From: Octopus sinensis
Lineage: Eukaryota
Assembly (NCBI RefSeq): GCF_006345805.1
Contig: NC_043015.1
Location: 47,678,001 to 47,742,000 of the forward strand
Direction of reading: 5' to 3'
Length of the DNA stretch: 64,000 nucleotides
The notes below the pieces were generated by a model. It was given only the letters and a program-made list of their open reading frames with translations. It searched no databases and was not told the origin of the DNA. How positions within the stretch are numbered: the first letter of the stretch is position 1; each line of letters starts with the position of its first letter. Shown here in pieces: positions 10,460-64,000 of the stretch. Position numbers and translations under genes: made by a program.

Positions 10460-10677
10460 TGAAGTGGTGCAGAAAAGTTCCTAGCTTTGGGTAAAAGAAA
10501 ATACACGAAAATCAGTTAATTATGATTTTATTTGACATATTCCCCTCTAAGGCTCACATACTTATTGCAGCAGTTTTCTAAGTTTTTCTAAGACCTGTAA
10601 AAGCACTCAGAAGGGTGAGCCTCCAAGCAGGCCTTTCATGAAACCCTTAAAGCCAGGAACTTTCCAGTACCCCCTCA
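10460..10677. mobile_element. Mariner-type MITE
   Basis: TA-flanked TIRs TGAAGTGGTGCAGAAAAGTTCCTAGCTTT / AAAGCCAGGAACTTTCCAGTACCCCCTCA. A related partial copy lies at about 17262-17393. Confidence 0.65.
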
Positions 10678-35966: not shown

Positions 35967-36889
35967 TTGAAACACGCACAGAGATAAGCACAGACATTTA
36001 AGGCCGTTATTCTATACTTTTTGGATTATGATTTCGTAAGAAATTAAGAGTGCCCCTAAAGATAGCTAAGATGAATTGCGTGTGTGTGTGTGTGTGCGTG
36101 CATGTATTCACTGACAAAAATGGGCCTCTTCAGAGCTTTTTGGTAGAAAACAAAATAACGATTACACAGTACATCGTTCGTCAATACGCTTGAGTTAGGA
36201 CAGAATCGAGACACGGAACTTTATATACCTTAGTTTATAACATGAATGAAATCAACATTTACTCAAAATGTGTGAATCCTACAAGTCTATTAAGCGATTT
36301 GTACTGTAGCAATAGTAGTACTATGGAATATCCACATATGTACTTTCATGTTTTATAAAGTAAACTGGATAATGTATATAGAAAATGACCATGTTCATGA
36401 AATTATTTGTGATGTAGAGCCAACCATATATCTACAATCAAACTACAAAGAAAGAATCAAGAATTAATATTAATATTAAATTTTCATCTGGTATCCGCTG
36501 AATTTTCTCTAGAGAACATTCTTTCTTTGTAGTATGATCGTAGGTGATCTATTTCTAGCATATGGCTGTCCACATAGTGGTTTTTAGCTCTTAATATATA
36601 TACACATATATTAGAATTTTCTCTGATTTTTCAGATTTTTGTATGCTAGGCTACTGGTTTTTAATTGATATTAATTAAATTAATATTCAATTTATCTCCC
36701 TCATTATTTAAATATCCACAATCAGATAATAGGCATTAATAAATACGAAAAACTAAGATACGTGTGTTTTTAAACTGGTAGAAATTATAAAATCGTAGCT
36801 AGACCAAGGCTATCGTCTGAGAGAGGCGGGAAGAAAACTAAGCAACGGTTCTGCCGCTAAGGTATTGGCACATTCGTTTAAAGGGTTAA

Positions 36890-37672
36890 GGCGACGAGCT
36901 GGCAGAATCGTTAGCGAGCCGGGCAAAATGCTTAGCGGTATTTCGTCTGCCGCTACGTTCTGAGTTCAAATTCCGCCGAGGTCGACTTTGCCTTTCATCC
37001 TTTCGGGGTCGATTAAATAAGTACCAGTTACGCACTGGGGTCGATATAATCGACTTAATCCGTTTGTCTGTCCTTGTTTGTCCTCTCTGTGTTTAGCCCC
37101 TTGTGGGTAGTAAAGAAATAGGTATTGGCACTGTCGTTTAAATAGCTAAAACATGGCGCACAGATTGTTTATTTCTAGCTGCGTATTCTGATTGGCTAAA
37201 ATAATACAGACGACAACGGTGATCAGTGATCGTGTAATCTGTTTAACTGGCTAAAATAAAGCTTGTGACTAGTTAAAATAACAGACGTGAAAATCAAACT
37301 GTCATCTCCTTAAGGTCGCTGCATTAGCTTCTATTTTTCTCTCTATTCTCTTCCCACGTGACCGATAGGCCAGACTGCTCGCTCTTTTTTGAGTCTGACC
37401 GTGATCCGTGCAACATCGATATTCTGAGCTGGCAGAAACGTTAGCACGCCGGGCGAAATGCTCAGCGGTATTTCGTCTGCCGTATTTCGTATTTCGTCTG
37501 CCGTTACGTTCTGAGTTCAAGTTCTGCCGAGGTCGACTTTGCCTTTCATCCTTTCGGGGTCGATTAAATAAGTACCAGTTACGCACTAGGGTCTATATAA
37601 TCGACTTAATCCGTTTGTCTGTCCTTGTTTGTCCTCTCTGTGTTTAGCCCCTTGTGGGTAGCAAAGAAATAG
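36890..37672 (+). mobile_element. Two SINE family B copies (~36890-37125 and ~37423-37672)
   Basis: Family B head, core and tail motifs. Confidence 0.8.
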
Positions 37673-44400: not shown

Positions 44401-44901
44401 AGGTTATAGGAACATAAACCTTCTTCCACGGAAAGATGGCTTAAACTGTGCTCTAAATGGAGGTGTAGTCAAATCCTATTTTATAGACTCAACCATGTTC
44501 TAAAATAAGTCGAAAGGTAAGCTACTATAAATCGGCACGAAGTTTCCGGACAACCCAATAGATTGCTGTATTTTTAGTCGATTAAAACCTTTTTAACTTT
44601 GATATTCGAGTTTGGGTTTATAACAGAACTCTACCACACTAAAGTCAATTTTTGAATTCATGTGATTGTAAATAAATATATAAAGTTGATCTGACTTGTG
44701 CTGTCGAGTGATCTTATTCAAGAATGATACCGCATGAGCTTTCCTGCGCAGGGATATGGTGTAGGTAAATGAACAGTAGTTGCACTAAAGCGGTTGACGT
44801 AAATATACGCTGAACGCTACCTCACACTGAGTGCTAACCTCAATCGACGCGATTACCGTAGCCGCGCGCTGGTAACCGAATGAATCACCGCCGTAAACTG
44901 G
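41440..44901 (+). mobile_element. Decayed piggyBac (PGBD4-like) transposon with nested SINE and mariner
   Basis: TTAA|CCCTTTTAAAACGGTTGACG left end and a degenerate ...AACTGG|TTAA right end. Frameshifted transposase (MGIMKKPTLTSYWNRDP...MSRDRF; FKQYNPTKR; YNEWMSGVDRSDQ) and a C-terminal CRD (KRC...CKAKRKCKETRYHCSQCDMPLCAVPCF) split by an insertion. Confidence 0.85.
43993..44558 (-). mobile_element. Mariner internal-deletion derivative, second copy (inverted)
   Basis: Same TIRs, same deletion junction and near-identical length (566 bp) as 32310-32876. Confidence 0.92.
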
Positions 44902-44974
44902 TTAATGTGGTTGATGTAAATAAACTCCGAACCATTGTCGTGCGCTAATTGCTGATCTCAGCCGACATGATTAC

Positions 44975-45813
44975 TTGTTTCTTTATTACCCACAAGGGAC
45001 TAAACACAGAGGGGACGAACAAGGACAGACAAACGGATTAAGTCGATTATATCGACCCCAGTGCGTAACTGGTACTTAATTTATCGACTCCGAAAGGATG
45101 AAAGGCATAGTCGACCTCGGCGGAATTTGAACTCAGAACGTAACGGCAGACAAAATACGTATTTCTTTACTACCTACAAGGGGCTAAATACAGAGAGGAC
45201 GAACAAGGACAGACAAATGGATTAAGTCGATTCTATCGACCCCAGTGCGTAACTGGTACTTAATTTATCGACCCCGAAAGGATGAAAGGCAAAGTCGACC
45301 TCGGCGGAATTTGAACTCAGAACGTAACGGCAGACGAAATACGGCTACGCATTTCGCATGGTATGCTAACGGTTCTGCCAGCTCGCCGTGATGATTACCG
45401 TCAATGCAACCTAGTTGCTTGATGAAAAAAAAACCCGTTGTCATGGGGTTGAAAATAAATACTGGGGGCGATCTGTTTGATTAAAACTCTTCGAGATAGT
45501 GCCCCAGCGTGGGCGCAGTTCAAGTATTGAAACAAATAAAAGATAAAAGATTACGATGTTACATAAATTGGTGTTCAAAGAAAGATGCATCAGAGATTTG
45601 TTTTATATACTCTTTTACTTGTTTCAGTCATTTGACTGCGGCCATGCTGGAGCACCGCCTTTTAGTCGAGCAAATCGACCCCCATGACTTATTCTTTGTA
45701 AGCCAAGTACTTATTCTATCGGTCTCTTTTGCCGAACCGCTAAGTAACGGGGACGTAACACATCAGCATCGGTTGTCAAGCAATGCTAGGGGTACAAACA
45801 CAGACACACAAAA

Positions 45814-45865
<52 letters not shown>

Positions 45866-46030
45866 GACAGGCTTCTTTCAGTTTCCGTCTACCAAATCCA
45901 CTCACAAGGCATTGGTCGGCCCGGGGCTATAGCAGAAGACACTTTCCCAAGGTGCCACACAGTGGGACTGAACCCGGAACTGTGTGGTTGGTAAGCAAGC
46001 TACTTACCCCACAGCCACTCCTGCGCCTAT
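44975..46030 (-). mobile_element. SINE B dimer (~44975-45390) and SINE A (~45608-46030)
   Basis: Reverse-complement family motifs. Confidence 0.8.
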
Positions 46031-46127
46031 ATAATTATATTTTTATATAATTTTTATATAATTTAGTTGGTGTTTATATTCTGAATTTGTTGATTATCTG
46101 AAAGAAAAATGTTGTTTATATTTTCAG

Positions 46128-46165
46128 ATCACAAAGATACAGTTCAATAGGTTCGAGCAGTGATG
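46128..46165 (+). CDS. 38-nt internal coding exon of FAM124-family gene
   Basis: ATATTTTCAG|...GATG|GTGAGT; reads SQRYSSIGSSSD(G) and joins in phase 1 to the Ser-rich start of the 51820 exon. Confidence 0.7.
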
Positions 46166-46595
46166 GTGAGTGTTTTTGTAGTGATTCCGTGTAAAGAAAT
46201 GTGTTATTCGTGACTAGAAATAGCCGTCGGAATGGAATTAAAATTGTATGAGGTTGGAAGGACTGCATGACATGAAGTGACGAGAATGGTTCTTTTGTAC
46301 CACATCACATAGCTCTTTACAATAAAGAGAAATTGAGTGGAACAGATAAATTGCCAGAGGGGAAAAAAGACACAACCGCGTAGAATGATTTAAGAGGACA
46401 TTTTTGCGCTTTTAATTGCGACGTAAAATAAATAAAATGTATATAAGTTGTGATTGAAATCAGATTGTGTATGAAACTCAGCAAGAACGGGTCTTTACTA
46501 GGTATCAGTGGTTCTGAACCGGGGCCCATATGATCCTTGGGTTGGGGGTCCACATAAGATTTTGTTTTTAAGTTTATGTCCAATAAACTGGTTGT

Positions 46596-47009
46596 GGGTC
46601 TTTTCGGTTTGAACGGCAGTTTTTAAAAATAATTTCCACGTAACTAAACACTTTTAAATTTCGTATACTGGTAGAATGTGTTTATAAAACATCTTTTTCT
46701 CTTGGCTTTATTGAGAAAATTCTATAGTTTGTAAGATATTTGTTGTTTTTTATTCTTCAATTTCTGCAATTTCAACCAATCACTGACGTCTATTGAGGTA
46801 AAAAAAACATTCTGTGCCGTATGACTATGTCCCTCGTTTAAGAAACAGATTGGGCTTATTTACATTTGTGAAGAAAAAAGATACCCTTCCCCCCACCCCT
46901 AACCCTAAAACAGATTGCATTGCAATAAATCGACACTAGGGACATAATTATGGGTGACAATTTCATATGACACTGCTAGAAAAAACTGCCGTTCAAACCG
47001 AAAAGATCC
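46596..47009. mobile_element. Merlin-like MITE (~415 bp), copy 1
   Basis: TIR GG.TCTTTTCGGTTTGAACGGCAGTTTT / AAAACTGCCGTTCAAACCGAAAAGATCC; homologous to 55505-55922. Confidence 0.75.
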
Positions 47010-47245
47010 AAGGGCTGTAATAATTTGGGGGAGGGGATAGTCGATTACATCGACCCTAGTATTCAACTGGTACTTAGTTTATCAACCCCGAAAGGATAAA
47101 AGGCGAAGTCGACCTCGGTGGAAATTGAACTCAGAACGTAAAGACGAACAAAATTCCGCTAAGCATTTCGCCCGGCGTGCTAACGATTCTGCCAGTTAAC
47201 CGCTTTGATACGATTTCTAATAATATTTAATTCTAAAAATAAATA

Positions 47246-47471
47246 TTGGGTTGTCCGGAAAGTTCCTGCCGATTCTATAGCAGCTTACCTTTCGACTTAC
47301 CCTCCCAAGCACCTCAATTCTGGGAAGAGGGTATTTTCAAGTTAAAGGAAAGATGGAGATGCATTGTGCAACAAAATGGTTCATATTTGGTTGATTAAAA
47401 ATGTAATGGCAAGTATTAATTGACCTTTTTCTTTCCTTTAAAAATCGGCATGAACTTTCCGGACAACCCAA
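47246..47471 (+). mobile_element. Mariner derivative, further deleted (226 bp)
   Basis: Same TIRs as 32310-32876, TA flanks, only the 3' end of the transposase retained. Confidence 0.85.
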
Positions 47472-47512
47472 TAGGATTTTTCAAACATCAAATGGCTAGG
47501 TGAGTCCAACCG

Positions 47513-48035
<523 letters not shown>

Positions 48036-48059
48036 TTATTCACTATTACCTACATAGGA

Positions 48060-49790
48060 GTCTATATCTACTCTAGCTAATACCATGCCCTTGGGTAGAA
48101 TCCTCCTCTATTCATATTAAATTCCTTCCAAGTTCTTCTGTCTAGCTTTGCTAATTCAGTTTTTGTCCAATCTACAAAAGCTACTGAGTATCTGAGTAAA
48201 TACTACCCAAGTATTTACAGCCTTCACTAGATTCGGACCTTTTTGCTTTGACTTCATTAGCTTCCTCACCCTTCTGATGTACTCCTCAACTTTCGTTTTC
48301 ATTTCTATAGTTAGTGCTCTGTTAGATTATAATACTCCTAGATACTTATAACTCTCTCCTCCTTTCGATGATTCTAATGTGTGGCCATCGCTGTTGACTA
48401 ACCGTCCCCTTTTCATGACTAATATTACACATTTATTTATGCCAAATTCCATGCCTACATCTTTGCTGGAAAGTCTTACAGTCCGTATTAAGGAATCTAT
48501 CTCTTTTTCATTCTTACTAAAAAGCTTCAGATCATCCATGTAGAGTAAATAGTGAATTTTTCCCTTACTATTTCTGAACTAATACCCTGCCTTTGCTTTC
48601 CTTAATACTAAACTGAGGAGGATCAAACATAAGACAAATGTTAAAGGGGACAACGAGTTAACTTACCCTAAGAATGTGTCCCCTAAGTAGAGATCTACTT
48701 TCTATTTCTTCATGCTAAAGCTAATTAATTCTCTTATGTTGTCTGCTATACTGAATATACTCAAACATTTACTTATCCATAAATGTAGGATTATGTCATA
48801 AGCTTTTTTGTAATCTATCCATGCTATTTTTAGATTTTTCTTTCTAGTTTTTATTTCATTTAGAACTGCTTTGTCTATGTATAATAGATCACACATTCCA
48901 CTAGCCTTCTTTCTGTTCTTCTTGCAATAAATGCTGGTTGTCAAGGTACTCGTAAATGCTTTCTGAAAGCATTCCTGTTATCAGCTTCCACTCTAATGGT
49001 AAGCAAGTGATTGGTCTATAGTTGCTAGTTGTATTGCCTTTGCTCTTATCTTCCATAATGTGTATTGTCCTCCCTCTAGTCATCCAATCTGGTATTATTC
49101 CTCCATTCAGGCAATCCTGAAGTTGTTCCCTCAGCCTCCCATGTAAATTACTAAATTTCTTTTGCCAGTATCCTTGAACTAAATCTGGTCCTGGGCCCTT
49201 CCAATTCAGCATTTTTCCTAACACTTTACTCATCAATACACAAGTCAGTCTTAGATCTGGCTGCTTCTCACTCACTATTTGTTCTCTCACTTTCTTTAAC
49301 CATACTGTATTTCCATTATGATTGACTGGCTTATCCCGTATATTACTCCAGAACTTTCTAGCTTCTTCTGCATTAGGTTTCTCATCTCCAGTACTTCCTA
49401 TTGTTTATTTGGTTATAAAATCCCTGGTGTCTCAAATAATCTATTCTGTTGATACTGGTCTATTCTTTTCTGATATCTGGAAAGCTTGCCTGCTACTGCT
49501 ATGATACGCTGTTTCAACTCTTCTATTACTGTCCCAAGTCCTTTCTTTTTGACTAAGTATCTTTTCTCAAGGGAAGATTTGCATCTTGTGTTTTATAACT
49601 TGTTCAGTTTCCAGGCTTCTATTCTACTCAGATCTTGTCTTAAAGTCTTCCCTTTATTCTGTAGTCTCCTTTTTCACATTTGCTCGTTTTAAATATTTCC
49701 TTGTGCTTTCCCTTTTATTCTTTTGTTTACACCTGCCACTCACTGCCTGAAGCTTCCAAACTTCCTAGATACACACACACTCTCTATCTA
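48060..49790 (-). mobile_element. R4/Dong-like (RLE clade) non-LTR retrotransposon fragment with RT
   Basis: Minus frames: NWKGPGPDLVQGYW, GRTIHIMEDKSKG..TSNYRPITCLPLEWK, IAWIDYKKAYD, YMDDLKLF, YKYLGVL; stops and frameshifts throughout. Confidence 0.85.
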
Positions 49791-50317
49791 GGGGCTTCCT
49801 GATCTAGCTCCCCCATTTAAATCCTGCATCGAAAAAAAAATTGGTGTTGTCCCCTTCTTTAAGCAAATATTTTGTTCATGATTAAGTCCGACATAGTTAA
49901 TATCTCGACTTTGACGGATTTAAATATCCCCATGTATTTAACTTATTTATATTTACATTATTTTATTCTTTTCAATTTAATGTCTCTAACTCTGCGTATT
50001 TTAATAAACTCTATTGTATTCCCTATAAACTTTCATGTCGCCTTCGTTATATCTATCCTTCTTGCTCTATCGTTCGATTTTTATAGTTAAAATAAGTCAA
50101 AAACACCAAGACGTGTCCAAAATTTCTGAATATTGTTGAACGAGGGGTGTTTTATGCTTGCTGACTAAATTTTTTTGAACTGAGCGAAAAGAACTCAACT
50201 GTAAATGTATTTTTCTTCGATGATTTTAGAAAGTAGTGCCGGCGAACCACAGTAAAATAATCTGGAAAGAGAGATGAATCGAAGAGCAAAATAATCCATC
50301 AAGCCATCCACCTTCGC

Positions 50318-50565
50318 TCACTGGGAGGGTCGTAGAGGTAGAGTCTTTGGATGCTTCCTCCATTGGGTCCTACCAGAAGCAACCATCATTACACTTTCTG
50401 GCTGGATTCCCAAGCATGACCGACTGAAACTATGGATATTATTCAACCATCTGGTTCTTGGTTTACCACTTGGCCTCCTCTCATTTGGCTCGGTTTGAAG
50501 AATCAGTCTTGCAATTCTTCCTTTTTGCTTTCTAATCATTTGTCCGTAGTACCAGAGTTGTATTT
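50318..50565 (-). mobile_element. RTE LINE ORF C-terminal fragment
   Basis: LRYYGQMIRKQKGRIARLILQTEPNERRPSGKPRTRWLNNI, the RTE terminal motif (GH..R....G.R..GRP...W.D). Confidence 0.6.
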
Positions 50566-50705
50566 TCTCCGAAAGTAGTGATAGAGTATGTATATTATTT
50601 CTTTTTTTAGTTGATATGCAATTACCCAGACCCTATTAAAGTGGATCTTAAGCGGGGCACCGAAGAAATGGTAAATGGTTTATGGCAAACAAGATTTCAC
50701 TTTAA

Positions 50706-51097
50706 ACTTACTCTGTTGCTTGTTTCAGTCATTTGATTGCGGCCATGCTGGAACACCGGCTCTAGTCGAGCAAATCGACCTCAGGATTTATTCTTTGTAA
50801 GCCTGTACTTATTCTATCGATCTCTTTTGCCGATCCGCTAAGTTACGGTGACGTAAACACACCACCATCGGTTGTCAAGCGATGTTGAGGGGGACAAACA
50901 CACACATATATATATATATATACAATATATACGATGGGTTTCTTTCAGTTTCCGCCTACCAAATCCACTCACAAGGCTTTGGTCGGCCCGAGGCTATAGT
51001 AGAAGACACTTGCCCAAGGTGCCACGCAGTGGGACTGAACTCGGAACCATGTGGTTGGTAAGCAAGCTACTTACCACACAGCCACTCCTGCGCCTAT
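50706..51097 (-). mobile_element. SINE family A
   Basis: Reverse-complement full-length family A copy. Confidence 0.85.
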
Positions 51098-51819
51098 GTA
51101 TTGCTAAAATAATATTCGAAGTTTCTTTATATGATCGGAAATGTAATTCCGAAGTGTTCATTTTGTCATAATGAGGATATGGTCAAAAACTTTGCGATAA
51201 AAAAAAAGGAGAAAACCTTTCAAATATAATAAAGCGGAAGTATAAAAAAAAAAATAACACCATTTTCCATTTCATTGTGTTAGCTTTGTTTCATTTTGAA
51301 AACTAAAAACTCATTTTATTACTTATTATTGTTTTTATTTTTATTTATATATATATATGGGTGCGCCAAAATCTTTTAAGTGCTTAGGGCCTCTATGGGT
51401 CTTAATCCGGCCCTGGCTGTGCCATTGATATGAAGAGTATGAAATTACAAGACATAGAATATAGTATCTTCGTGACGTCCACGTGACTGTAGATGTAAAT
51501 AATATTAGCAGAATGCTTGGAATTTCTATAGAGTTTGGTGACTTTAAACTGTTTCCTTCACGAGCAGGGAGGATGAGGTGTGATAACGCTATCGTGTGAT
51601 GTGTATTGTGTGCATTTTTGTCAAGATGTAATGGTGAGATGTGCGCGTACACATTATGCTTGCGAATTTATATCTATATAAATCGCTCAGATTCTTATGT
51701 AAAAATATTTTGTATTTTTATTCATTGTTGTGTCCATTTAAATTGCATTTATTTTGTTGTTATTTACTTTGGGTTTATGGCCAACACAGTCACACATTTT
51801 TTCTTCTTTCCATTTTTAG

Positions 51820-52745
51820 GTGCTAGCTTGAATTCTTCGAAGGGAAGCTCGAGTCGTTCAGATTCTAGCTCCGAAGCCGCAAGTATAATCACTACCGAAA
51901 TTTATGAATCATTTCTACCTTTTGAAGTTAAAATATTCGCCGACAGCAGCCAAATCAATATGCTTAATACACTGTATCGGCCGCTAATAAACCTTCTTGA
52001 TTCTGACCTACATATCATAAAAATATCAGATAATAGAAGTCCTCGTTGTTCTGAGACTAATTCACTGAAAAAGCAAGATTATCTCCGCCATGTTTTTGTG
52101 CCCAGTTTTTCGATTTTGATTTTTTTACTCGAGGACGGATTGCTTACTCAGCAAAGATTTTCGGAAGCTCAGTTTTACTTTCAACAGAAACCTTGGAAAT
52201 TTTATCATCGATCACGAATAGACAAAAGAAAAGCAATAGAATTTTGTTCCGATAATATGCAGGAATTCTATGGTACTTCAAAAGGTTATCCTCTCTGGGG
52301 AATTCGTCGCGTACATTATGGAAAAGAGCATTTGCGATTTATGTTATTTGTCAGCTGCGACAATTGGCTTGCGATGGTGAGCTTTTACAAAGTTCTTATG
52401 AATTCAGCTCCTGAATACGAACAAGATGACTTCTGTATGTTCACAGTGGACAACCAAGAACATTATGACGTACAGTTTGTTCTCAAACAACTGCCTCCAC
52501 ATATTATTCCCGAACCATTATATTTCGTTGAACTTGAATTTCAGATATCTGATATTGGCATTCTGATGCCACATTTTCCAAACGTTTGTAAACCAATGTC
52601 TGGTCATAAATGGTGCACATCGGATCATGACGGAAATCCCCTTATAATGAGCTTAAAACCGAGACTACAATGTTCACCCCAGACGTCTATGAAACGAAAT
52701 TCACCCGAATATTTGTCAGCCGCTAACAAAGTGTTTTTCGTGTGA
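51820..52745 (+). CDS. FAM124A: FAM124-family protein, main/last coding exon
   Basis: Acceptor TTCTTTCCATTTTTAG|G at 51819. Contains YPLWGIRRVHYGKEHLRFMLF, LKQLPP, LEFQISDIG.LMP.FPN.C.P, W.T.DHDGN, matching vertebrate FAM124A/B motifs; the A/B paralogue cannot be resolved here. Confidence 0.9.
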
Positions 52746-53224
52746 AAAACTCAAACGCGCCAAATTCCTAACAGTTATAACACAAAAACATCTAACTTAT
52801 CTCGAAGAAGCGATTGTTCATTATGTTTTACCGGCAATAATGTGTATACAGATGGAGTCTCCAGAGAAGAATCGAACCAGGTACTAATGGAATGTCTTTA
52901 AGATCTTTATTCGTTTTTTTACAAAGAACAGTTAAGATTTTGATGTTCGTATATGACCTACTTTTTATTGAATGTATTTCGGAAAAGTCAAACCTTATGG
53001 TTGAATGTATTATATGTATATAAGAGGACTATTATTAATGATAAATATACCGTTCAAACTAAGCAGAAAATCTGTTATTACTGAACTGAGCGTTAATACA
53101 GAAATAATATTCTCACAAATCTAAGACAATGGCTAAGATGGACCAAGAATAACAAATATGTTTAGTGTACATTCATGAAGAGCTATTGAGTACTTAGTTG
53201 AGATATACCTTTACAGAACAATTC

Positions 53225-53520
53225 CAGTGGATTTGGTAGACGGAAACTGAAAAGAAGCCCGTCGTATATATGTATATGTATATATATATGTGTGTGTGTG
53301 TGTTTGTGTGTCTGTGTTTGTCCCCTCAACATCGCTTGACAACCGATGCTGGTGTGTTTACTCCCCCCTGTAACTTAGCGGTTCGGCATAAAAACCGATA
53401 GAATAAGTACCAGGCTTACAAAGAATAAGTCCTGGGGTCGATTTACTCGACTAAAGGCGGTGCTCCAGCATGGCCACAGTCAAATGACTGAAACAAGTAA
53501 AAGAGTAAAAGAGAGTAAAA
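53225..53520 (+). mobile_element. SINE family A, 5'-truncated
   Basis: Family A central and tail motifs. Confidence 0.85.
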
Positions 53521-54313
53521 AATAGGGCGCATGACACAAAGAGAACTTACAAAAAATTAATAAATAAGCACCGGAAGTGGAGAGTAGCATTTGTTATTGA
53601 GTAATAGTTTGTGCGCAGGTGTTGAAGACTATTACATGTCTCAGAATCATATTATTGCCAGTTTGGAAATCTAATTCTCTGTAATTTATATATGTATTTT
53701 ATGGCTTATGTCTTTAAGGACGATCAGTGGGAAGATGAAAAGACAATTCCATTCTGGTTCTTAACAGGAAACTATTTTCGGTGGACATGCATCAAATACA
53801 AACACCGGTAAAAAAAAATATGTAAAACAAGCAACACGGTGCCAACTGCATCCAGATTTCCGGACATCTTTTTTTTTTTTTCAACTAGATTCCAAGTAAC
53901 GAAATAAACTTTAATATCATTTTTGATTACAACATTTCTGGAACTCAGAAAACATTTATAAAGAAATCATTTATTTTCTCTTCGACTCTAGACACGATGT
54001 AAATCATTTCTGTAATGTTTGCAAATAATATATTTGCGAAATAGATTATAAATTTTATACCAAAACAAACAAAAAAGAATTATACAAGCGCATTCATAAA
54101 ACACGATTCATGCATCCATAAATATTCATGCGTATCTATATGAGCATAGGTGTTTACATACTTATACATAAACGCACACAATATCTATACACATATCTAT
54201 ACACTTATTACCAAATTTCCGCTATTTTAATGCTAAATCGTTATTCAGAAAAAGCGGAACAAAGTCATTGTCATCAGAAAATGCGGAACAAAATCATATT
54301 TCATGAACAAAAT

Positions 54314-54670
54314 TTATTTCAAGGACTTTCCTTTAGGTTTAGAAAGATTAGATATTTCCTCCGAAGGTTTTCGAGATTTAGCTAGTCTTGTTTTAGTCAG
54401 TTTTGTATAAACGAACCTTCTAGGATTTGGTGGCCGCAGGCTGCCTTTACAATCTATACAAAAGCAGAAAAAATCGCACTGCTTCATGTAATATTTGCAG
54501 TATTTGATACAATGGTCGAAGCTGTGCTTCAGATGTGTGAAACATTGCTTGAAGCAGGAGAGGGAAAAATTACCGCACGCAATGGAACAATCTGCATTTT
54601 CTTTGAAGCTCATGTAAGCAGAAGACGACAGGTACGGAAATGTAAAGAGAAGTAGTAATATTTCGGCTTT
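54314..54670 (-). CDS. Secreted cysteine-rich peptide precursor, main coding exon (unrecognised family)
   Basis: Acceptor TTTTTATTTCAG; phase-0 frame KAEILLLLFTFPYLSSSAYMSFKENADCSIACGNFSLSCFKQCFTHLKHSFDHCIKYCKYYMKQCDFFCFCIDCKGSLRPPNPRRF...KSLK*. Hydrophobic signal peptide, 10 Cys, RR site; AATAAA on minus at 53970-53975. Confidence 0.8.
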   Translation of the reverse strand, partial: KAEILLLLFTFPYLSSSAYMSFKENADCSIACGNFSLSCFKQCFTHLKHSFDHCIKYCKYYMKQCDFFCFCIDCKGSLRPPNPRRFVYTKLTKTRLAKSRKPSEEISNLSKPKGKSLK

Positions 54671-55209
54671 CTGAAATAAAAAGAAATATATAGAAAATAT
54701 ATAAGATTAAATATTTCAAGGTCGCTGTGAAAATTATTGAATGGAATTTTATAAGTGAAGAAAAATTAAGCATTTAAGAAGAAATCATCGTTTATAAATT
54801 CATATGAAACTATACACAGACTATCACACGAGGTTTCATATGAAATAACTTTATTATTATTATTATTATTAATATTATTATCATCATCATTCTTCTTCTT
54901 CTTCTTATTATTATTATTATACATACATACATAATAATAATAATGATAATAATAATAATAACAACAATAAGTAGGTGTAAACACATGAACAAAATAAAAA
55001 TAAACAAAGACAAATTACACAAACGTATATAAACAGGAGATACAAATATTACAGACACTTCCCCCCACCACACACACACACTAACTAAACATAGACACAC
55101 ATAGAGGTATACGCATGCGAAAATGAAGACACATACAATAGAAATACAAAATACAAAATGGCTGACCGTTAGTAAGGAGAGACACACAAATAAGAAAGAA
55201 GAAAGCAAA

Positions 55210-55254
55210 GGACCACTGATGAGGTCACAGGAGTGTGACGAAAGAACTCTGGCC
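55210..55254 (+). ncRNA. Minimal type I hammerhead ribozyme motif
   Basis: GGACCA-CUGAUGA-G-GUCACA(GGAG)UGUGAC-GAAA-G(AA)C-UC/UGGCC: intact core, 6-bp stem II, 2-bp stem III and stem I pairing. Confidence 0.7.
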
Positions 55255-55504
55255 GAAATAAGATTAAGATTAATGTAAAAAATAAATAACGCTGGAGAGA
55301 AGTAACACCAAATATATAGTGCGTGTGGCAAAATGACCATTCCTAAATACAACAATAACTTGTGAATAATTTCATTTTAATAAACGGGGAAAACTAACAC
55401 AATTTCAAAAGATTCTTTGTTTCTATGCTGAGGCGAAGATTTGATGAAGCTTCAAATCATATGGAACAGATTTTTTAAATTCGATTTGTCGTAAGGCAAG
55501 TCAT

Positions 55505-55922
55505 AGATCTTTTCGGTTTGACCGGCAGTTTTTAAAAATAATTTCCACGTAACTAAACACTTTTAAACTTCGTATACTGGTAGAATGTGTTTATAAAACA
55601 CCTTTTTCTCTTGGCTTTATTGAGAAAATTCTATAGTTTGTAAGATATTTGTTGTTGTCTTTTCTTCAATTTCTGCAATTTCAACCAATCAATGACGTCT
55701 ATTGAGGTGAAAACATTATGTGCCGTATGAATATGTCCCTCGTTTAAGAAACAGATTGGGTTTATTTACGTTTGTGAAGAAAAAAGATACCCTTCCCCCC
55801 ACCCCTAACCGTAACTCTAATACAGATTGAAATGTAATAGATCGATTCTAGGGTCATAATTATGGGTGACAATTTCATATGACACCGCTAGAAAAAAACT
55901 GCCGTTCAAACCGAAAAGATCC
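55505..55922. mobile_element. Merlin-like MITE, copy 2
   Basis: 28-bp TIRs and an 8-bp TSD CAAGTCAT/CAAGTCAC. Confidence 0.8.
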
Positions 55923-56490
55923 CAAGTCACTAATAAATATAAATAATGTACAATAAATAATAAAGTGAACTAAAAGAGGAAACAGGTTCTGAAGGGCTTA
56001 CGCAAAAAAAAAATCTTTATTTAATTTCTTTCTTGGTTATGGAAAGAAGACTAATACCTGGTGGTAATTATTAGCGACTCTTATAAAAGGGAGATAATTT
56101 AAAGAAATAATGTTTGATCGGACTACATTGCTCTGATGATGTCTGATAGATCGAAACAAGTCCCTAGTTATCACCCTTGCCAGTTAACAAAGATTTCCCA
56201 TTCTTTGATTTAAGAAATTAATTCATACTTAAAATTATCTCTTTTTCGTTCTAATTGCCACTAGAAGAGTTTTTGTTTTTTTTCAACTAAGAAGGGCTTT
56301 CAATTAATTAAGAATACTTTGTGAACTTCATTCAATACATCACCTCTTAATTATCCAAATTTATGTCATTAGCCCGTCTTAGCTATTTCCCTTCGTTTTA
56401 TTTATTAACTATGCAAACTATACTGGCTAAAACTATTCCCATATATCAAATGATTGATAGGTTTGCAGCAGGTCAATGAACTGGAATGTG

Positions 56491-56688
56491 AAGGACCCCT
56501 TATTAACTCATGCAGTGGAGTTAGGGATCATTCAAGACTTATTCCAAGTAGTTCTTGCTCTTACCATTCAAAGATTCCAGGATCTCGGTAAGGATCCCTT
56601 ATTAACTCATGCAGTGGAGTTAGGGATCATTCAAGAGTTATTCCAAGTAGTTCTTCTTCTTACCATTCAAAGATTCCAGGATCTCGGT
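56491..56688. repeat. Tandem duplication, 2 x 99 bp, containing the ATG/splice donor of the Cys-rich gene
   Basis: Units 56491-56589 and 56590-56688 differ at only a few positions; each contains TGAATG|GTAAGA on minus. Confidence 0.92.
56664..56666 (-). CDS. Start codon of the Cys-rich peptide gene (ATG is the last codon of a likely 27-nt exon 56664-56690)
   Basis: TTTGAATG|GTAAGA with an in-frame TGA immediately before the ATG; splicing to 54670 gives MKAEILLLLFTF.... Candidate upstream acceptor TTTTACAATATAG at 56691 and upstream donor CAG|GTAAAA at 56952. Confidence 0.7.
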
Positions 56689-57204
56689 ATCTATATTGTA
56701 AAACAGAAATTTTGTGCGACATCCAGCTCATCTCTATCTTTTCATTGTCGGAAAGGGACGGGTTTGAAGCTTTATTCTAAGAGATCGATAAACGATTGGT
56801 TTTTGTGGTTCTTTCTTGTTTTGTAAAATTAAGCCTGTTCTTGACGATGAGTTCTATATTTGACTCTGATGTCGAGCACGGGGATGATCGGGCAACGATC
56901 TGTTTAGCCATCAACACCACACAAAGATGTGACAATTCAAATATTTTTTACCTGTACGTCTCTTCTTGATTTTGATGAAGTTAATGAGATGCTAGTAACT
57001 GAACAGTAACATCTCAATGATTACGCCAATAACATTGATTAGATACCAGTATACGACCGATAACGAAAGAGTTAAAACTGTACTATCAAGATTAACCAAC
57101 AGCTTATGGAAATATGGTAGCTAGCATCTAACCAAACACGCTAGCCAAAAGCTTATGGAAATATGGTGTAGCAGTCTCGTCCATTGATTAATACAATCAT
57201 TATA

Positions 57205-57417
57205 ATTATCTTACACCGCATATGCCGGTGTATAAGACGCGCTTTTTTTTATTCGCAAATCAAGAAAAAAATTGGCGTGCGTCTAATGTAACCGTATTAA
57301 GGATGGGATACCCAGTGTATGAGAGAATATAGTGAAACATAAAATCTATTTTTCCTCACAAATGTCGGGGTTTGTCTTATGCGAAAGGGTGTTTTATATA
57401 CCAGCAAAAAACGCTGT
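57205..57417. mobile_element. Tc2/Tigger-like MITE (degenerate)
   Basis: CCGGTGTATAAGACG ... GTCTTATGCG...TATATACCAGCAAAAAACG sub-terminal motifs. Confidence 0.45.
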
Positions 57418-57445
57418 CTTCAGCAAAACAAAATCTAAGCGTTGA

Positions 57446-57479
<34 letters not shown>

Positions 57480-57489
<10 letters not shown>

Positions 57490-59058
57490 TCTGAAAGTAT
57501 TGTTTCAAGAATAAGAATTGTATGGAGGAAGTTCAGAGAGCTATTCCCTTTGTTGGCAGCAAAAGGACTCTCTCTCTCCCTCTCAGAGTGGAAAGTAGAC
57601 TGTATGATGCTTGTGAGAGAACGGCTATACTCTGCGGTAGTGAGACATGGGCTCTGAATGCAGAAGACATGCGTAGACTGGAGAGAAATGAAGTTAGTAT
57701 GCTCCGTTGGATGTACAACATCATTGCGCATGTGCGACAAAGTGCAAATGTATTGAGAGAGAAGTTAGGCATAAGTGGAATCAAACGTAATATGCAAGAG
57801 AGAAGACTATGTTGGTTTGGACATGTGATGTGTATGAATGAGGACAGCTGCATAAAGAAATGCCGATCACTGAAAATGGATGGTACCCGCGGAAGAGGGT
57901 GATCCAGGAAAACGTGGATGAAGTGGTAAGGACCGATCTCAAAGATGTTGGGCCTCGCGGAGGAAATGTCAACGGAGCTAGATGTCTGGCGATATGAGGT
58001 TCTTGACAAGACCCGCCCACGTCAGCGAAACTCAGTTCCAGAAGCACTGTGTGTGTCCCACCCACACTTAACAAGAAAACTTCTCACACCCCCTACCACA
58101 ACAAATGAAACTACATCTCTTCCTTTCCTCGCATTTCCCCTTTATGCACTATGCTTACCTCCTATTCCCCAATCCTCTCTTGGCCCTGTCTCAATGATAT
58201 CATCTGCTAGTTCGACTTGTGTGTTCCACCCACACATACCAAGAAAACTTTTCACTCACCCTATCCAAACAAACTAATGTACGTCTTCTCTTCCTCACAT
58301 TTCCTCCTTCATACACTATGCCTACCTCTCACTCCCCAATCCTGTTCCTCTGTGTCATTGCTATCCGGTAGCACCCCCACCCCCGACCCTATACATACCC
58401 AAGCCCCCACCCCGCCCGTCCATACCCCCTAATCACGCTTCCTCGCAATAACTTGCCACTTATATTATGACGTTCGAACCTCAAGGGTATACCCTGGCAC
58501 CCTCTCTTCCTTTACTCACCATCCCATTTATTTTCTGATCCCCGTCCCTTTTGAGTATGCCCGGCACTTTGCCAATATCTCCATCCTGCTGTCTTCCACT
58601 CTCTCCTCCTGCACTTCCATCAGGTTTGGTAATCGTGTATTTCCTTTACGGAAGTGCACCTGTCTCTGTTTTCATTCCTGATCTCTCCCCACTTCTCTCT
58701 CTCTCTCTCTCTGGTCGAGTAACTTTGTACTTCCTCTACAGCAAGACACATGTTTCTGTCTCTCAGCCTCGCTATAACCTTTCATCATCTGACACAAGAT
58801 CACCTTCTCCAATGCCCCCACCCTTCTCAAAAGAGATTTTTTTTGTCTTGCAAGTACTTGGTAACCACGTCAGTGCAGGTGCCACTTAAAAGCACCCAGT
58901 CCACACTGTAAAATGGTTGGCATTTGGAAGGGCATCCAGCTGTAAACATCCTGCCAAAACAGTTGCAGAAGTCTGGTGTAAGCTTCTACCAAACCGTCCC
59001 ACCCATGCCAGCATGGAAGGTGGACGTTAAGCGATGATGATGCTGATAATGATGATGA
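57480..59058 (+). mobile_element. 5'-truncated RTE LINE: ORF end, long pyrimidine-rich 3'UTR, (GAT)n tail
   Basis: RLYDACERTAILCGSETWALNAEDMRRLERNEVSMLRWM...RRLCWFGHV...GTRGRG, then the UTR and terminal segment ending GATGATGATG. Confidence 0.85.
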
Positions 59059-59092
59059 TATGTATCATTTAATGTACACTGTGTTAAAATAA

Positions 59093-59193
59093 GAGCTACT
59101 AATACTCTTTTGCTATTAAGACATGTGGTTAGGGCATGTTATAGAAACTAGCCTAACTACGTGTCTTAATAGCAAGAAACTATTAGTAGTTTT
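59093..59193 (+). ncRNA. pre-miRNA-like hairpin (candidate)
   Basis: 24-bp upper stem TTGCTATTAAGACATGTGGTTAGG / CCTAACTACGTGTCTTAATAGCAA whose two non-WC pairs are G-U on plus, a basal stem GAGCTACTAATA / TATTAGTAGTTT and a loop of about 15-18 nt. Confidence 0.4.
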
Positions 59194-59499
59194 TAATGTG
59201 CATTATATAATATTTATCTCTCATTGGATGGAGTACATTTTTGTTGTTCTGACCTTAACAGTGAGCTATATATATATATACTCTAACAGTGGAGAGAACC
59301 TATGGAAGAAGTAGACCCAGGAGGACATGGGATGAGGTGTGTATATACAGGTATGTATATATATATATATATATATATATACATAGATACGAAACGGGAA
59401 AGATGACTATTTATAAATGACAAAACTTTCTCAGGTGAAGAATGTACCCCACAACATAGGTTAGCAGTTAGCGACTTCAGGATCAGGGCTAAATGGCTG

Positions 59500-60800
59500 C
59501 CTAGAAGCTGACTAGCATGGCAAAGAAGGGTCTAGAAGCTTAAGGTTCTTCTGAATGGACAGAAACTTTGAGACATATTACTTGAAGCTTTTGACGAAAA
59601 AAAGGAGGATATAGAATCACATAATGTGGAAGACAATGGAAGGTTCTTACGGGACAACCTGTTGAGGGCTACTGACCAGATCTGCGACTGATGCAAAGTC
59701 CTTTCTCGACCTATAGTAACGTGGTGGTAGAACAGTGTATTTGACAGAGCCATTACGGAAAAGAAACAGGCATGGAAGGACTGGAAGAACGGTGGTCGCA
59801 GGGAACTGTATCAGATCGCTAGAAGGAAGCTAGGAGACAGGTTTACTTAGCCAGAAGGGAAGCAGATACGAAATGTTCTGCATCGTGAGGATCAGAGACT
59901 TGAAGTGTTTCGAATTGCAAGACAGTGTGTGAGAGAAAATCGCGATGTCATAGGAGGGAAATGTGTCCGCATGGATGATGCCTCACTTGCATTTAATGAT
60001 GCTGCAAAGAGAGAGACTTGGAAACGCCATTATGTAAGGTTGCTAAATAAAGAGAATGAATGGGAGAAAGAGAGTCTGCCAAATGTCGACCCAACAGAGG
60101 GACCAGTTATCTGAATTGTCAGTACCTTGGCAGATAAAACAATTAATGGTATGAAGACAGGTAAAGGCGGCGAGCTGGCAGAAGCGTTAGCACGCTGGGC
60201 GAAATGCTCTGCGGTATTTCGTCTGTTGTTACGTTCTGAGTTCAAATTCCGCCGAGGTCGACTTTGCCTTTCATCCTTTCGGGGTCGATTAAATAAGTAC
60301 CAGTTGAACACTGGGGTCGATATAATCGACTTAATCCGTTTGTCTGTCCTTGTTTGTCCTCTCTGTGTTTAGCCCCTTGTAGGTAGTAAAGAAATAGGTA
60401 TGAAGACAGGGAAAGCTCCTGGCCCATCAGGAATCACTGCTGAGATGCTTAAAATATCTGGTGGTGTAGGCTATAGTCTAGTCACCCGTATAGTCAACCA
60501 ATGACTGGTGTAACAGCACCATAGTCAACTGCTACAAAGGTAAAAGTGGTGCATTAGATAGGAATACTTTCAGAGGTATCAAGTTGTTGGATCAGGTGAT
60601 GAAAGTCACGGAGAGGGTCATAGGGTCTCAACTAATTAGGGAGAGGGTTAGTTTAGACGAGATGCAGTTTGGGTTTGTGCCAGGGAGAAGCACCACTGAT
60701 ACTATATTTCTGGTAAGACAGCTGCAGGAGAAATTCCTAGCCACAGATAAAACCTCTGTATTGGCTTTCGATAACATGGAGAAAACCTTTGACAGGATGA
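59500..60800 (+). mobile_element. RTE LINE ORF fragment (EN-RT linker and RT N-terminus) interrupted by SINE B
   Basis: VFRIARQCVRENRDVIGGKCVR; MKTGKAPGPSGITAEMLK; QFGFVPGRSTTDTIFLVRQLQEK. SINE B at 60162-60396 has a 14-bp TSD GGTATGAAGACAGG. Confidence 0.85.
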
Positions 60801-61750
60801 TTCCACCGGATGTCAGGATTTTATGGCTTTAAATACCATTGGAGTAGATTTGCAGTGTATCCCATCAGTTGGTCCCAGTAAATTGTACAGCAAATATTTT
60901 GTGGATATTGGTTTGTGAGAGAGCTGTGACTGCCATATTCTTTAAAGCCAACAATAATCTCTCTTTTACTCTTTTACTTGTTTCAGTCATTTGACTGCGG
61001 CCATGCTAGAGCACCGCCTTTTAGTCGAGCAAATCGACCCCAAGACTTTCCTTTCCGCCAAATTCTTGAGCCATATCAACCAAAAATATTATTAAACTCA
61101 GATACTACCCAACGTTGTTAATATTTCCATTGTAGAAGGCGGCGAGCTAGCAGAATCTTCAGCGTGCCGGACGAAATGCTTACCATCATTTCATCCGTCT
61201 TTACGTTTTCAAATTCCGCTTTCGTCCTTTTGGGGTCGATTTGATCAACTTATCTTCTCCTCCAAACCTGCTGGCCTTGTGCCAAAATTAGAAACCCAAA
61301 TTTCCATTGTAGATAGTAAGATCTTCACCGTCCAATATTATTTCCATGCACGTTTCTTGTGGACCCTACTATATAAGTAAATTGTGGGTTTGGTGCCCAA
61401 AATCGAAATACGGACAGACTGTCTTGTTGAATATTCCTTCCGAAAGTTTATGTCAAAGACAATGATCGTGCCTTTGGTTACAAAGTTGTTCTCTGAAGCC
61501 CTTCAATGGCAGATACGAGGGAAGTAATTACTTTCGTTAAATGTTGCCCGTCCAGAAACAATAAGTGAAAATCAAGTCAAACGCCGTTAAATGGTTTCTA
61601 ATCTAGTTGTATTGCCACAAGGTATAAATTCCAGTTAAACCGTTACGTTTGTACGATTCTCATTTATATATATTTTTTTTTTCGACTTCAGACAAAAGAG
61701 CCTTATTCATTAAAAATATAATTTTCATTCGGACTGGCAATTTCTTTATA

Positions 61751-62125
61751 TCTATATATATAAAGCTGAAGTTATCTGTGTGGTAGGTTTGGTAGCCTTC
61801 AACTAGCACTATCTCCTCCGAGACCCTGCGGCGCAAGTCGACCAAAATTGAGAGTATGATAAAAGAAGGCTTGCTCTTCCTTCCGTAGAAGAAAAAAATT
61901 CAAATCGGACCATGTTAACACCAGAAATTACTTACATCAAAAAGGTGCTTTTTTTCTATGAAAATCCCTATTTTTTTACGATCTTTTGACTGCTGTGTCA
62001 CCATTTTTCGGTGTATTCTAACCAGAAAAATGTTCACTTAAAGAGAATAACAAGCTACATAATGCAAAATTTTTACTTTACAAAAATTCCAATTCTAAAG
62101 GGTCGAAACAAACCCGAGTAACAAA
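61751..62125 (+). mobile_element. Non-autonomous Helitron-like element
   Basis: A|TCTATATATATAAAGCTGAAG 5' end; CCCGAGTAAC near the presumed 3' hairpin, with the CTAG terminus missing. Confidence 0.5.
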
Positions 62126-62974
62126 ATGTTGGAGCAATTAAAACGTACGTCGTGTTCTGTCAAGTGAAGATTATCATTATTAAGTACAAGATTTGTCGAT
62201 GAAATAGCAAACCAGTTTGTTATATCAAAATGATCGCAGGAAGATTATGTTGTTCGTGTGAGATGCATGGTCAGACGATGAAGATGACGTTGGTATGGAG
62301 GAGATGGTCAAATGAAGGGGATGCTGTTGGAGGCGGGGGTGATGATCATATGAAGGGGATGGTGTTGGTGTGGAAGAAATGATCCAGGGAAGAGAGGGAT
62401 GTTGGTGTGGGAAGATGAACAGATAGATGAAGGGAAGAGTGTTAGTATAGGGGAGATGGTTAGATGAAGTGAATGGTGCGGGGGAGATGTCCACATGAAG
62501 CAGATGGTGTTGGTGTGGGAGAACTGGTCAGATGAAGCGGAGTCTGTTGGTGTAGGAGAGATGTCAGACGATGGGGGTGATGATGCAAGGGCGATGATCA
62601 GAGGAGGGAATGGTGTTTGTGTATGGGAGGTTGTCATATTTACGCGGGAGAGGTGGTGCTGGTCAGACCAAGAGAGCGGTATTGGCGGGGAAAGATTGCC
62701 AGTAACGATGGTGTTGACTTAGGCGGGAAGACGACATGGCCTGATGCATTATTATATGTATGTATACATACACGTATACAAACGTGCATTCACATACACT
62801 CACACACACACATTCATAAATATTTTAAATACCAATATACACCAATGCAAAACTAAAGTAGTTAGTTTGCAGTGAACACTGGTATAAACAGGCGAACTAG
62901 AATGCAAACATCCCTTAAAGGATTATAAGCCCTTGGTATGATTATATATATACATATACATATACATAAACATA

Positions 62975-63015
<41 letters not shown>

Positions 63016-63234
63016 TATATATGGTTGTTGTTGTTTACACACCCGGCTTCGTCTTTTGTTTTGTCTTTTTGTAAATCTCAACTATATATATATATATATG
63101 CATATATATACATATATACATGCATATATAGATATATATTTGCATCGCTCTCTCTCTATATATATATCTATATGTGTATATATATATGCATATATACCTA
63201 TATATATATATATATACATATATATATTTGCATA

Positions 63235-63265
<31 letters not shown>

Positions 63266-63275
63266 CACATACACA

Positions 63276-63484
63276 CAGGGTGTTCAAAAAGTCTCTCCAC
63301 TGATTTTTTTTTCTCCAAGATCTATTTCTTATGTACCGAAAATTAAGAACGATACTTTCAACACCTCTTATAAAGTTTTTAAGTCTTGTAAAGTCTAATA
63401 TATTTTTTTGTAGTCTTACTCCATCTTATAAATATTTATTTTGCAATAAAATTCTTACTGAGGAGAGACTTTTTGAACACTCTG
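63276..63484. mobile_element. Tc1/mariner-type MITE (209 bp)
   Basis: TIRs CAGGGTGTTCAAAAAGTCTCTCC / GGAGAGACTTTTTGAACACTCTG|TA. Confidence 0.8.
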
Positions 63485-63558
63485 TATATTCCAGAATTTA
63501 ACCACTGTTAGCGATTTTTTCCCGCCGTCTTCTTTTTCTCTTGGACTTTCCTGTTCCC

Positions 63559-63595
63559 TGTTTCTGAAGAAGAGCTTTGCTTGAAACGTAAAACA
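63559..63595 (+). ncRNA. Minimal type I hammerhead-like motif in a Penelope-type repeat
   Basis: UGUUU-CUGAAGA-A-GAGC(UUU)GCUU-GAAA-CGUA/AAACA: 5-bp stem I, 4-bp stem II and a loopless palindromic ACGU stem III. Confidence 0.55.
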
Positions 63596-63779
63596 CCCTG
63601 TCTTTCCTCCTCTTATTAATACCCTGCAACGTACCACGTCCTCGAGTTGTTATTTTTTCCTGTTGTTTTTTTTATTATATGTAGTTCAGCAAAATTTAGA
63701 TTCAGATGAATATGATACTTAAGTCAAAGGCACCAGAATTTTGTATGGTATTATCCATATAAATCCACGGGGTGATTAC

Positions 63780-63868
63780 AATCAAAATAAGCAACAAGTA
63801 TATCCTCTGATATATTTTGAAATAAGCAACAAGTATATCCTCTGATATACTTGTTGCTTATTTTGATT
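63780..63868. repeat. Palindrome with internal direct duplication
   Basis: AAATAAGCAACAAGTATATC-CTCT-GATATACTTGTTGCTTATTT is a perfect 20-bp stem; the left arm plus loop is duplicated upstream. Confidence 0.85.
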
Positions 63869-64000
63869 ATATATATAATATAATATATATAACAAGATGC
63901 AGCACGGATTTTTGTCAGTGAACAGGTCGCGGATTTTAGCGACGAAAATATTTTGACAAATTAAACTTAAATGTTGAAGTGAATCGAACGGCTTTTGTGT

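Follow-up and report, generated by a model that had tools for sequence, protein, structure and literature searches.

A locus on the minus strand of Octopus sinensis DNA raises the question of whether this animal encodes a small, cysteine-rich secreted protein belonging to no named family, and if so what such a protein might do. The locus lies within a 64,000-nucleotide stretch (assembly GCF_006345805.1, contig NC_043015.1, positions 47,678,001 to 47,742,000), referred to here as the window. A first-pass annotation of the window had proposed an unrecognized secreted peptide gene at this position, with a twin C-x3-C-x6-C-x3-C framework. The gene is very probably real and secretory in character. 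As to the whole picture, we lean, with modest confidence, toward a conserved single-copy gene of two coding exons whose product would be a secreted, basic, ten-cysteine protein acting as an endogenous ligand.

The main coding exon is the second of the gene (Table 1) and is opened by a strong splice acceptor, ...ttttatttcag/AAAGCC at 54670/54671. The open frame from 54670 to its TAA stop (54316-54314) reads KAEILLLLFTFPYLSSSAYMSF...KGKSLK; translation of the frame opened by the acceptor gives KAEILLLLFTFPYLSSSAYMSFKENADC...KGKSLK, within a protein of 119 residues once an upstream ATG is included. The sequence in frame 5' of the acceptor contains stop codons but no ATG; the start codon is therefore necessarily supplied by a further exon upstream, spliced on in phase 0. 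The N-terminus is hydrophobic, with a maximum Kyte-Doolittle nine-residue mean of 2.56, and a signal peptide of roughly 19 residues would be cleaved between A19 and Y20. Ten cysteines are found at residues 29, 33, 40, 44, 55, 59, 66, 70, 72, and 75 (spacings 3-6-3-10-3-6-3-1-2), the C-x3-C-x6-C-x3-C spacing occurring twice. R85-R86 is the single dibasic site of the octopus protein and marks the beginning of a tail with an isoelectric point (pI) of 11.2 and a net charge of +10 over 35 residues, counting R85-R86. The predicted mature protein has a mass of 11.7 kDa, a pI of 9.5 and a net charge of +13, the core alone contributing +3. Two candidate poly(A) signals were identified, AATAAA overlapping the stop codon (54318-54313) and ATTAAA at 54231-54226.

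Much of this had been anticipated in the first-pass annotation: the acceptor, frame and stop of the main exon, the signal-peptide-like N-terminus (which is also under coding constraint), the ten cysteines, the dibasic site and the AATAAA motif are all present, and the automatic list of open reading frames (ORFs) does contain just a truncated 99-residue frame starting at M21. Of the internal two-fold repeat that it had also described, the cysteine spacing and one phenylalanine are shared, but no other residue is common to the two halves.

The gene has orthologs. Three further protein clusters match the octopus protein: P0002 occurs on five Logan contigs that stem from a number of sequencing runs, P0004 is a nearly identical variant taken from another run, and P0003 lies on a 161-kb ENA contig. 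All three are ORFs called on unspliced genomic DNA and continue into the intron, with N-terminal extensions that are mutually unrelated, and the N-terminal 68 residues of P0003 are an artifact of a prokaryote-style gene call on eukaryotic DNA. Genes of the ENA contig (L002) were called with TGA read as Trp, and at positions 10001-10549 P0003 has W where the DNA has TGA. From the acceptor onward the orthologs are 62-65% identical to the octopus protein. A cag acceptor (ttacag or ttccag, followed by AGG) occurs in L002 and in a second orthologous contig, L003, at the same codon boundary as in the octopus exon, and P0002, P0003 and P0004 all keep it; the sequence upstream of it is not conserved. 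At the nucleotide level, octopus and the orthologous contigs resemble each other within the exon only, and they have no octopus repeat family in common.

Orthologs conserving the cysteines had been named in the first-pass annotation as a test of the gene, and all ten core cysteines are invariant among the octopus protein and P0002-P0004, together with the S-x-A/Y motif, the N-x-S sequons at N35 and N109, and the string LRPPNPR. Within the signal-like segment E4, I5, L6, L7, L8, F10, P13, S17, A19, and Y20 are invariant, as is M21; of the residues between the cysteines, H47 and H50 are conserved. The ratio of non-synonymous to synonymous substitution rates (dN/dS, Nei-Gojobori method) was 0.06-0.13 for the whole exon, 0.03 for the core (L002 vs. 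L003), 0.03 (L002 vs. L003) and 0.16 (window vs. L002) for the signal-like segment, and 0.2-0.7 for the tail. In the signal-like segment, L002 and L003 are separated by seven synonymous differences and one non-synonymous difference, and in the core the proportion of synonymous differences (pS) from octopus is 0.77-0.87, which is saturated. The tail is relaxed in sequence and keeps its charge, with +9 to +10 in the orthologs and a pI of 11-12 overall. Such a pattern bears the signature of an old, constrained coding exon. No paralogs were found in about 100 kb of flanking DNA or among 1.84 billion representative proteins, and no paralogous exons in the window, in 40 kb of Octopus vulgaris or in 20 kb of L002.

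The description of the gene as unrecognized holds in that it has no name, family or literature, but an identical nameless model already exists. A protein search returned the same 119-residue protein (P0001) in NCBI nr and UniRef, without name or Pfam domain, encoded on OX597832.1 of assembly GCA_951406725.2, which is the O. vulgaris reference (PMC10700109). The gene is thus in the databases as an unnamed model, but uncharacterized and without a named family. The window DNA is not the O. vulgaris reference record and, judged from its alignment over 44701-64000, probably derives from another individual or from a sister species such as O. sinensis. The gene region aligns to O. vulgaris (L001) with about 98% identity and with indels, and the flanking repeat-rich parts at 91-95%; the main exon shows no difference.

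Searches for a family agree with the earlier statement that none could be named, as Pfam, HMMER, PDB sequence, Foldseek and literature searches gave no convincing match. Pfam and NCBIfam returned no match for the window protein, and a scan of JGI metagenomes returned none. When 1.84 billion representative proteins were searched exhaustively with a HMMER profile, nothing emerged beyond the gene's own family and one bacterial HAMP-repeat protein (P0005), rejected as a relative since its score was inflated by eight repeats. No ortholog from an annotated cephalopod proteome other than that of O. vulgaris was present in the protein collections searched. In the literature there was no match to the sequence motifs of the protein, and no description of it among papers on octopus neuropeptide precursors. 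The gene is likely lineage-restricted as judged from these searches of annotated and representative proteins, among which small two-exon genes are rarely annotated.

With regard to the fold, the AlphaFold models are helical in the core region and of low confidence, the full-length protein scoring 43 and the core 48 in the predicted local distance difference test (pLDDT). The core model has one helix for each four-cysteine set (residues 27-48 and 52-69), and Foldseek found no match to it in the PDB, the model being too poor for this absence to count. The cysteines of each set are placed at i, i+4, i+11, and i+15, within a 60-degree arc of an alpha-helix, and the two sets are mirror-symmetric (29+70 = 33+66 = 40+59 = 44+55 = 99). 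Given this mirror geometry, two antiparallel helices turning at residues 49-50 would bring the four cysteine pairs face to face. A four-rung ladder of disulfides (29-70, 33-66, 40-59, and 44-55) would then probably staple the helices, with C72-C75 as a local CxxC bond forming the fifth disulfide and a probable N35 glycan on the face opposite the cysteine stripe. On this hairpin model, helix 2 has a Lys/Tyr/Phe face made up of K57, K60, K64, Y61, and F68. The double helical hairpin of the first-pass annotation does not come out as preferred, as AlphaFold, at its low confidence, gives two long helices and a single four-rung hairpin suits the cysteine geometry no less well. From this modeling, one hairpin with four disulfide rungs and a pair of small hairpins (29-44/33-40 and 55-70/59-66) appear equally likely, and a 1-3/2-4 pairing like that of the receptor TACI is possible too. 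A small, secreted, disulfide-rich protein is of a familiar kind; the mirror-symmetric cysteine framework is unusual. It is conceivable, though we would not expect it, that this is an ancient single-copy cephalopod signaling protein whose core is a new animal fold, an "8C hairpinin" consisting of a four-rung hairpin with a CxxC cap, acting via a conserved receptor. Should the four-rung hairpin be real, it would be a compact and very stable scaffold of interest to peptide engineers.

Known helical hairpins offer partial likenesses. Plant alpha-hairpinins have a 4C form (CX3C-X4-20-CX3C) and a 6C form (CX3CX3C-X4-20-CX3CX3C) and allow a maximum of two extra cysteines outside the core motif; the 6C form has three rungs, a precedent for hairpins with more than two, and versions with extra flanking cysteines exist (PMC11591084). 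The octopus protein resembles them in its CX3C motifs and cationic character, the antiparallel helices and ladder disulfides of the plant peptides being in its case predicted. The 4C pattern occurs in it three times (29-44, 40-59, and 55-70), with C40X3C44-X10-C55X3C59 fitting the motif and each half (n = 6) fitting it formally. It differs, however, in being an animal gene product with ten cysteines, in its 3-6-3 spacing per arm as against 3-3 in the 6C form, and in its much greater length (65-100 residues) with no sequence similarity. Membership was rejected, as six further cysteines lie outside any one core motif and so break the family's exclusion rule (at least three extra).

The twin CX3C small Tim and twin CX9C CHCH proteins, residents of the mitochondrial intermembrane space, are also helical hairpins held by mirror-placed cysteine pairs. 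The octopus protein shares this mirror symmetry, its helical hairpin again being a prediction. The Tim and CHCH proteins, however, are two-rung hairpins imported into mitochondria, and they lack both a hydrophobic signal at the N-terminus and sites for glycosylation. Small Tim membership, which calls for two CX3C motifs in about 90 residues and no signal peptide, was likewise discarded, with no Pfam match to zf-Tim10_DDP or CHCH and with a hydrophobic N-terminal signal present. Aplysia attractin is a glycosylated helical hairpin pheromone with three disulfides, and it and the macro-conotoxin/con-ikot-ikot proteins are secreted mollusc proteins of about 60-90 residues with helices cross-linked by several disulfides, an arrangement predicted for the octopus protein too; their cysteine frameworks differ from its own, however, and there was no PDB sequence match to them.

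An endogenous extracellular ligand is favored because the gene is single-copy and its core has been under very strong, long-term purifying selection. Genes for venom, antimicrobial or mating proteins tend to duplicate and to diversify. Under the favored explanation, exon 1 would give the ATG alone and exon 2 would encode the remainder; the 119-residue product would enter the secretory pathway via its signal peptide, the ten core cysteines would form five disulfides, and a strongly basic protein of roughly 11.7 kDa would leave the cell. The invariant core would bind a conserved endogenous partner in a hormone-, cytokine- or other ligand-like role, and the fast-evolving cationic tail may tie the protein to glycosaminoglycans or membranes, or may be a pro-region cut at R85-R86. 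With a neuropeptide precursor in mind, the protein has a signal-like N-terminus and a single dibasic site, which is RR in octopus and RK in the orthologs; no glycine that could serve for amidation precedes this site. As R-K would be a poor convertase site and the glycine is lacking, classical neuropeptide processing does not appear well supported. The exon, its frame, its conservation, the selection on it and the lack of relatives among the proteins searched are shown; signal cleavage, the disulfide map, glycosylation, secretion and function are what we infer for this protein. Among the many lineage-specific secreted proteins whose role in cephalopods is unknown, this one is notable in being single-copy and near-frozen in sequence across a divergence that saturates synonymous sites, which points to a conserved molecular partner. 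A hormone- or cytokine-like protein would add a cephalopod-specific signaling system.

A number of points weigh against this explanation. The ligand function is read from evolutionary pattern and composition only. It is a guess from the depth of divergence that the orthologous contigs come from a different cephalopod order. The choice of exon 1 draws on the annotation of another group and on promoter-like motifs. The poor AlphaFold scores make the topology tentative, and G34-N35, halfway along the first proposed helix, could interrupt that helix. In addition, the second cysteine-rich domain (CRD2) of TACI has the same 3-6-3 spacing, and its disulfides pair as 1-3/2-4.

The strongest competitor, though a rather unlikely one in our judgment, is host defense, in which a cationic, disulfide-stapled hairpin with a polycationic tail would disrupt microbial membranes much as alpha-hairpinins or thionins do. 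The basic mature protein, the concentration of positive charge in the tail, the retention of this charge as the tail sequence drifts and the CX3C motifs shared with alpha-hairpinins are all consistent with such a role. The core alone carries just +3, however, and a single-copy gene with a core dN/dS of about 0.03 across saturated divergence is a poor fit for the venom or antimicrobial role suggested in the first-pass annotation, as antimicrobial peptide genes typically diversify and duplicate.

Less likely again is a venom or salivary toxin, a water-borne pheromone or a reproductive protein, for example of the accessory sex gland or egg coat. Such proteins would be secreted and cysteine-rich, as predicted here, and the limitation of the gene to one lineage as far as seen, its conserved glycosylation sequon and the parallel with attractin would suit them, but there is no gene-family expansion, the very strong purifying selection is unlike that of most toxins and mating proteins, and there is no sequence or fold match to a solved toxin or pheromone.

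A further alternative concerns the structure of the gene, which the first-pass annotation had started at an ATG/GTAAGA at 56666-56664. This motif is present, with a twin at 56567-56565, and either would give a gene of 2.4 kb; its role as first exon is what was not confirmed. In O. vulgaris the annotated coding sequence spans L001:10001-30150, with the main exon beginning at 29794. An ATG stands at L001:10001-10003 with gtaagt directly after it, so that the first coding exon of the annotation supplies the ATG alone, and intron 1 is 19,790 bp. The window end aligns at about L001:19986, which places the annotated exon 1 about 10 kb beyond coordinate 64000. The annotated ATG is preceded by TATAAA 149 nt upstream (9852) and CCAAT 184 nt upstream (9817), has A at -3 and G at +4, and there is no other ATG in the preceding 200 nt. 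The ATG at 56666-56664, in contrast, lacks a TATA, has T at -3 and is preceded by three other ATGs within 80 nt, and it sits in a local tandem duplication, each copy of the 99-bp unit carrying one ATG/GTAAGA (96% identity between copies, with no other occurrence in the window or L001).

In favor of the proximal start, its GTAAGA donor is strong (8.5 bits) and the protein it gives is the same. Since any ATG/GT candidate gives this same protein, sequence alone cannot place exon 1, and in 29.8 kb of O. vulgaris upstream of the exon (the 19.8 kb of intron 1 and 10 kb further upstream) the gene strand carries 25 ATG/GT sites, of which five, the proximal start among them, have equally strong donors. 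The O. vulgaris annotation combined Iso-Seq and RNA-seq evidence, via PASA/TransDecoder, with ab initio predictions (PMC10700109), and we infer that a 3-nt initial coding exon 20 kb distant would be hard to obtain without a transcript. Most likely, then, the start codon lies about 20 kb upstream of the main exon and outside the window, and a start at 56666-56664 or at its twin is improbable. No counterpart of the O. vulgaris exon 1 was detectable in the 10 kb upstream of the L002 exon. An ATG-only first coding exon at a distance of tens of kilobases lets a gene slip past ORF-based scans and many annotations.

It has also to be considered whether each C-x3-C-x6-C-x3-C unit folds like the second half of a TACI/BCMA-type domain, the protein being a tumor necrosis factor (TNF) receptor-like module that, as a soluble decoy, binds a ligand of the TNF family or some other ligand; we regard this as very improbable. 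TACI CRD2 (1xut) was the sole match in PDB sequence searches, at E = 0.36 with the octopus mature protein, 0.037 with the profile and 0.0076 with the L003 core. Five of the six cysteines align, the last four with identical 3-6-3 spacing, the strings SLSC and KQC-YFC are shared, and the real fragment outscores 2000 shuffles in which the cysteines were fixed. The TACI/BCMA domains (1xut, 1xu1) are the sole solved structures with any sequence resemblance. The match is nevertheless below any safe threshold, and none like it was found among the 1.84 billion proteins or with the Pfam TNFR, TACI or BCMA models. The second TACI cysteine aligns with Phe52, and the DHL of TACI aligns with THL in octopus or RHL in the orthologs, so that the Leu alone is kept and the Asp of D-x-L is replaced by Thr or Arg. 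In TNF receptors the Cys1-Cys2 bridge is universally conserved, and those of the TACI/BCMA type are type III membrane proteins without a signal peptide, whereas the octopus protein is a small, predicted secreted protein with two such units, a putative signal peptide, no transmembrane segment and no TRAF tail (criteria from PMC5360319). TNFR/TACI membership was rejected on these grounds; the most that can be taken from TACI is that a C-x3-C-x6-C-x3-C unit is able to form a compact module with two disulfides.

The residues aligned to TACI CRD2 (about 35-70) are also covered by a match to the Pfam CRAL_TRIO family of Sec14-like lipid-binding domains (PF00650), so at least one of the two matches is due to chance. 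CRAL_TRIO matches the two non-octopus orthologs (L002 and L003) at 24-25 bits against a cut-off of 22.6, over profile positions 17-68 of 153, and does not match the octopus protein. The match is lost on reversal, shuffling or replacement of Cys by Ser, and falls to 15 bits with Cys replaced by Ala. Homology to CRAL_TRIO was discarded, the match being partial and fragile and a third of a lipid-binding domain being unable to fold in a 65-residue disulfide core; we judge it a chance match to an amphipathic helix, at most supporting helical structure. The overlap illustrates how a short, amphipathic, cysteine-rich sequence can yield misleading profile matches.

Least credible of all is a protein that is not secreted, starting at M21 or held by a hydrophobic anchor, with a Cys/His-rich core that binds metal inside the cell and a basic tail that binds nucleic acid, for despite the invariant M21, the conserved H47 and H50 and the very basic tail, codons 2-20 are constrained, an h-region of some 11 residues could not span a membrane, conservation extends to two N-x-S sequons, and Pfam gives no zinc-finger or Tim10 match. 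M21 itself is ruled out as the start codon because the coding constraint on the signal-like segment upstream of it shows that this segment is translated.

Table 1. Features of the cysteine-rich gene and its surroundings in the window (positions are those of the window).
Feature	Position	Strand	Evidence
Main coding exon, codons 2-119 and stop	54314..54670	-	Identical to P0001 translation; 0/357 nt differ from O. vulgaris
3' end of intron 1: polypyrimidine tract and cag acceptor	54671..54700	-	Acceptor kept in L002 and L003
Signal-peptide-like segment K2-A19, h-region ILLLLFTFPYL, S-x-A at -3/-1 then Y20	54617..54670	-	Hydropathy, conservation; cleavage site putative
Conserved 65-residue core Y20-P84: ten Cys, N35-F/Y-S sequon, C72-x2-C75, LRPPNP end	54422..54616	-	Alignment, dN/dS
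Dibasic R85-R86 (R-K in orthologs), putative convertase site	54416..54421	-	Alignment
Cationic C-terminal tail F87-K119 with conserved S-N-L-S sequon	54317..54415	-	Charge count, dN/dS
AATAAA overlapping stop, candidate poly(A) signal	54313..54318	-	Sequence reading
Part of intron 1 (runs off window end), with repeat and long interspersed nuclear element (LINE) fragments	54671..64000	-	Alignment to L001
99-bp x2 tandem duplication with two ATG/GTAAGA, most likely intronic	56491..56689	-	Repeat comparison, ATG/GT scan

A search of the whole window with Rfam found nothing. A neighbor of the gene is a large exon with a FAM124 domain (51606-52745, plus strand, E = 2e-57), convergent with the cysteine-rich gene and with the two stop codons about 1.6 kb apart; it is annotated in O. 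vulgaris too, and was not seen within 10 kb in L002. Also on the plus strand, an uninterrupted ORF of 252 residues (21029-21787) encodes a proteasome alpha-type subunit (Pfam Proteasome and Proteasome_A_N); being complete in a single exon, it looks like either a processed retrocopy or a gene without introns. A further single ORF of 508 residues (3448-4974, plus strand) encodes a leucine-rich-repeat protein with an N-terminal hydrophobic segment, an LRRCT domain and a C-terminal segment resembling a membrane span.

Intron 1 of the cysteine-rich gene is largely repeat-derived. LINE reverse-transcriptase fragments occur at 57522-58009 and 48901-49290, and a repeat of roughly 230 bp, resembling a short interspersed nuclear element, is present in many copies of 90-94% identity, for example at 5402-5626, 7319-7550, and 25728-25959, with further copies at 32889-33115, 36889-37120, 45160-45388, and 60165-60396.

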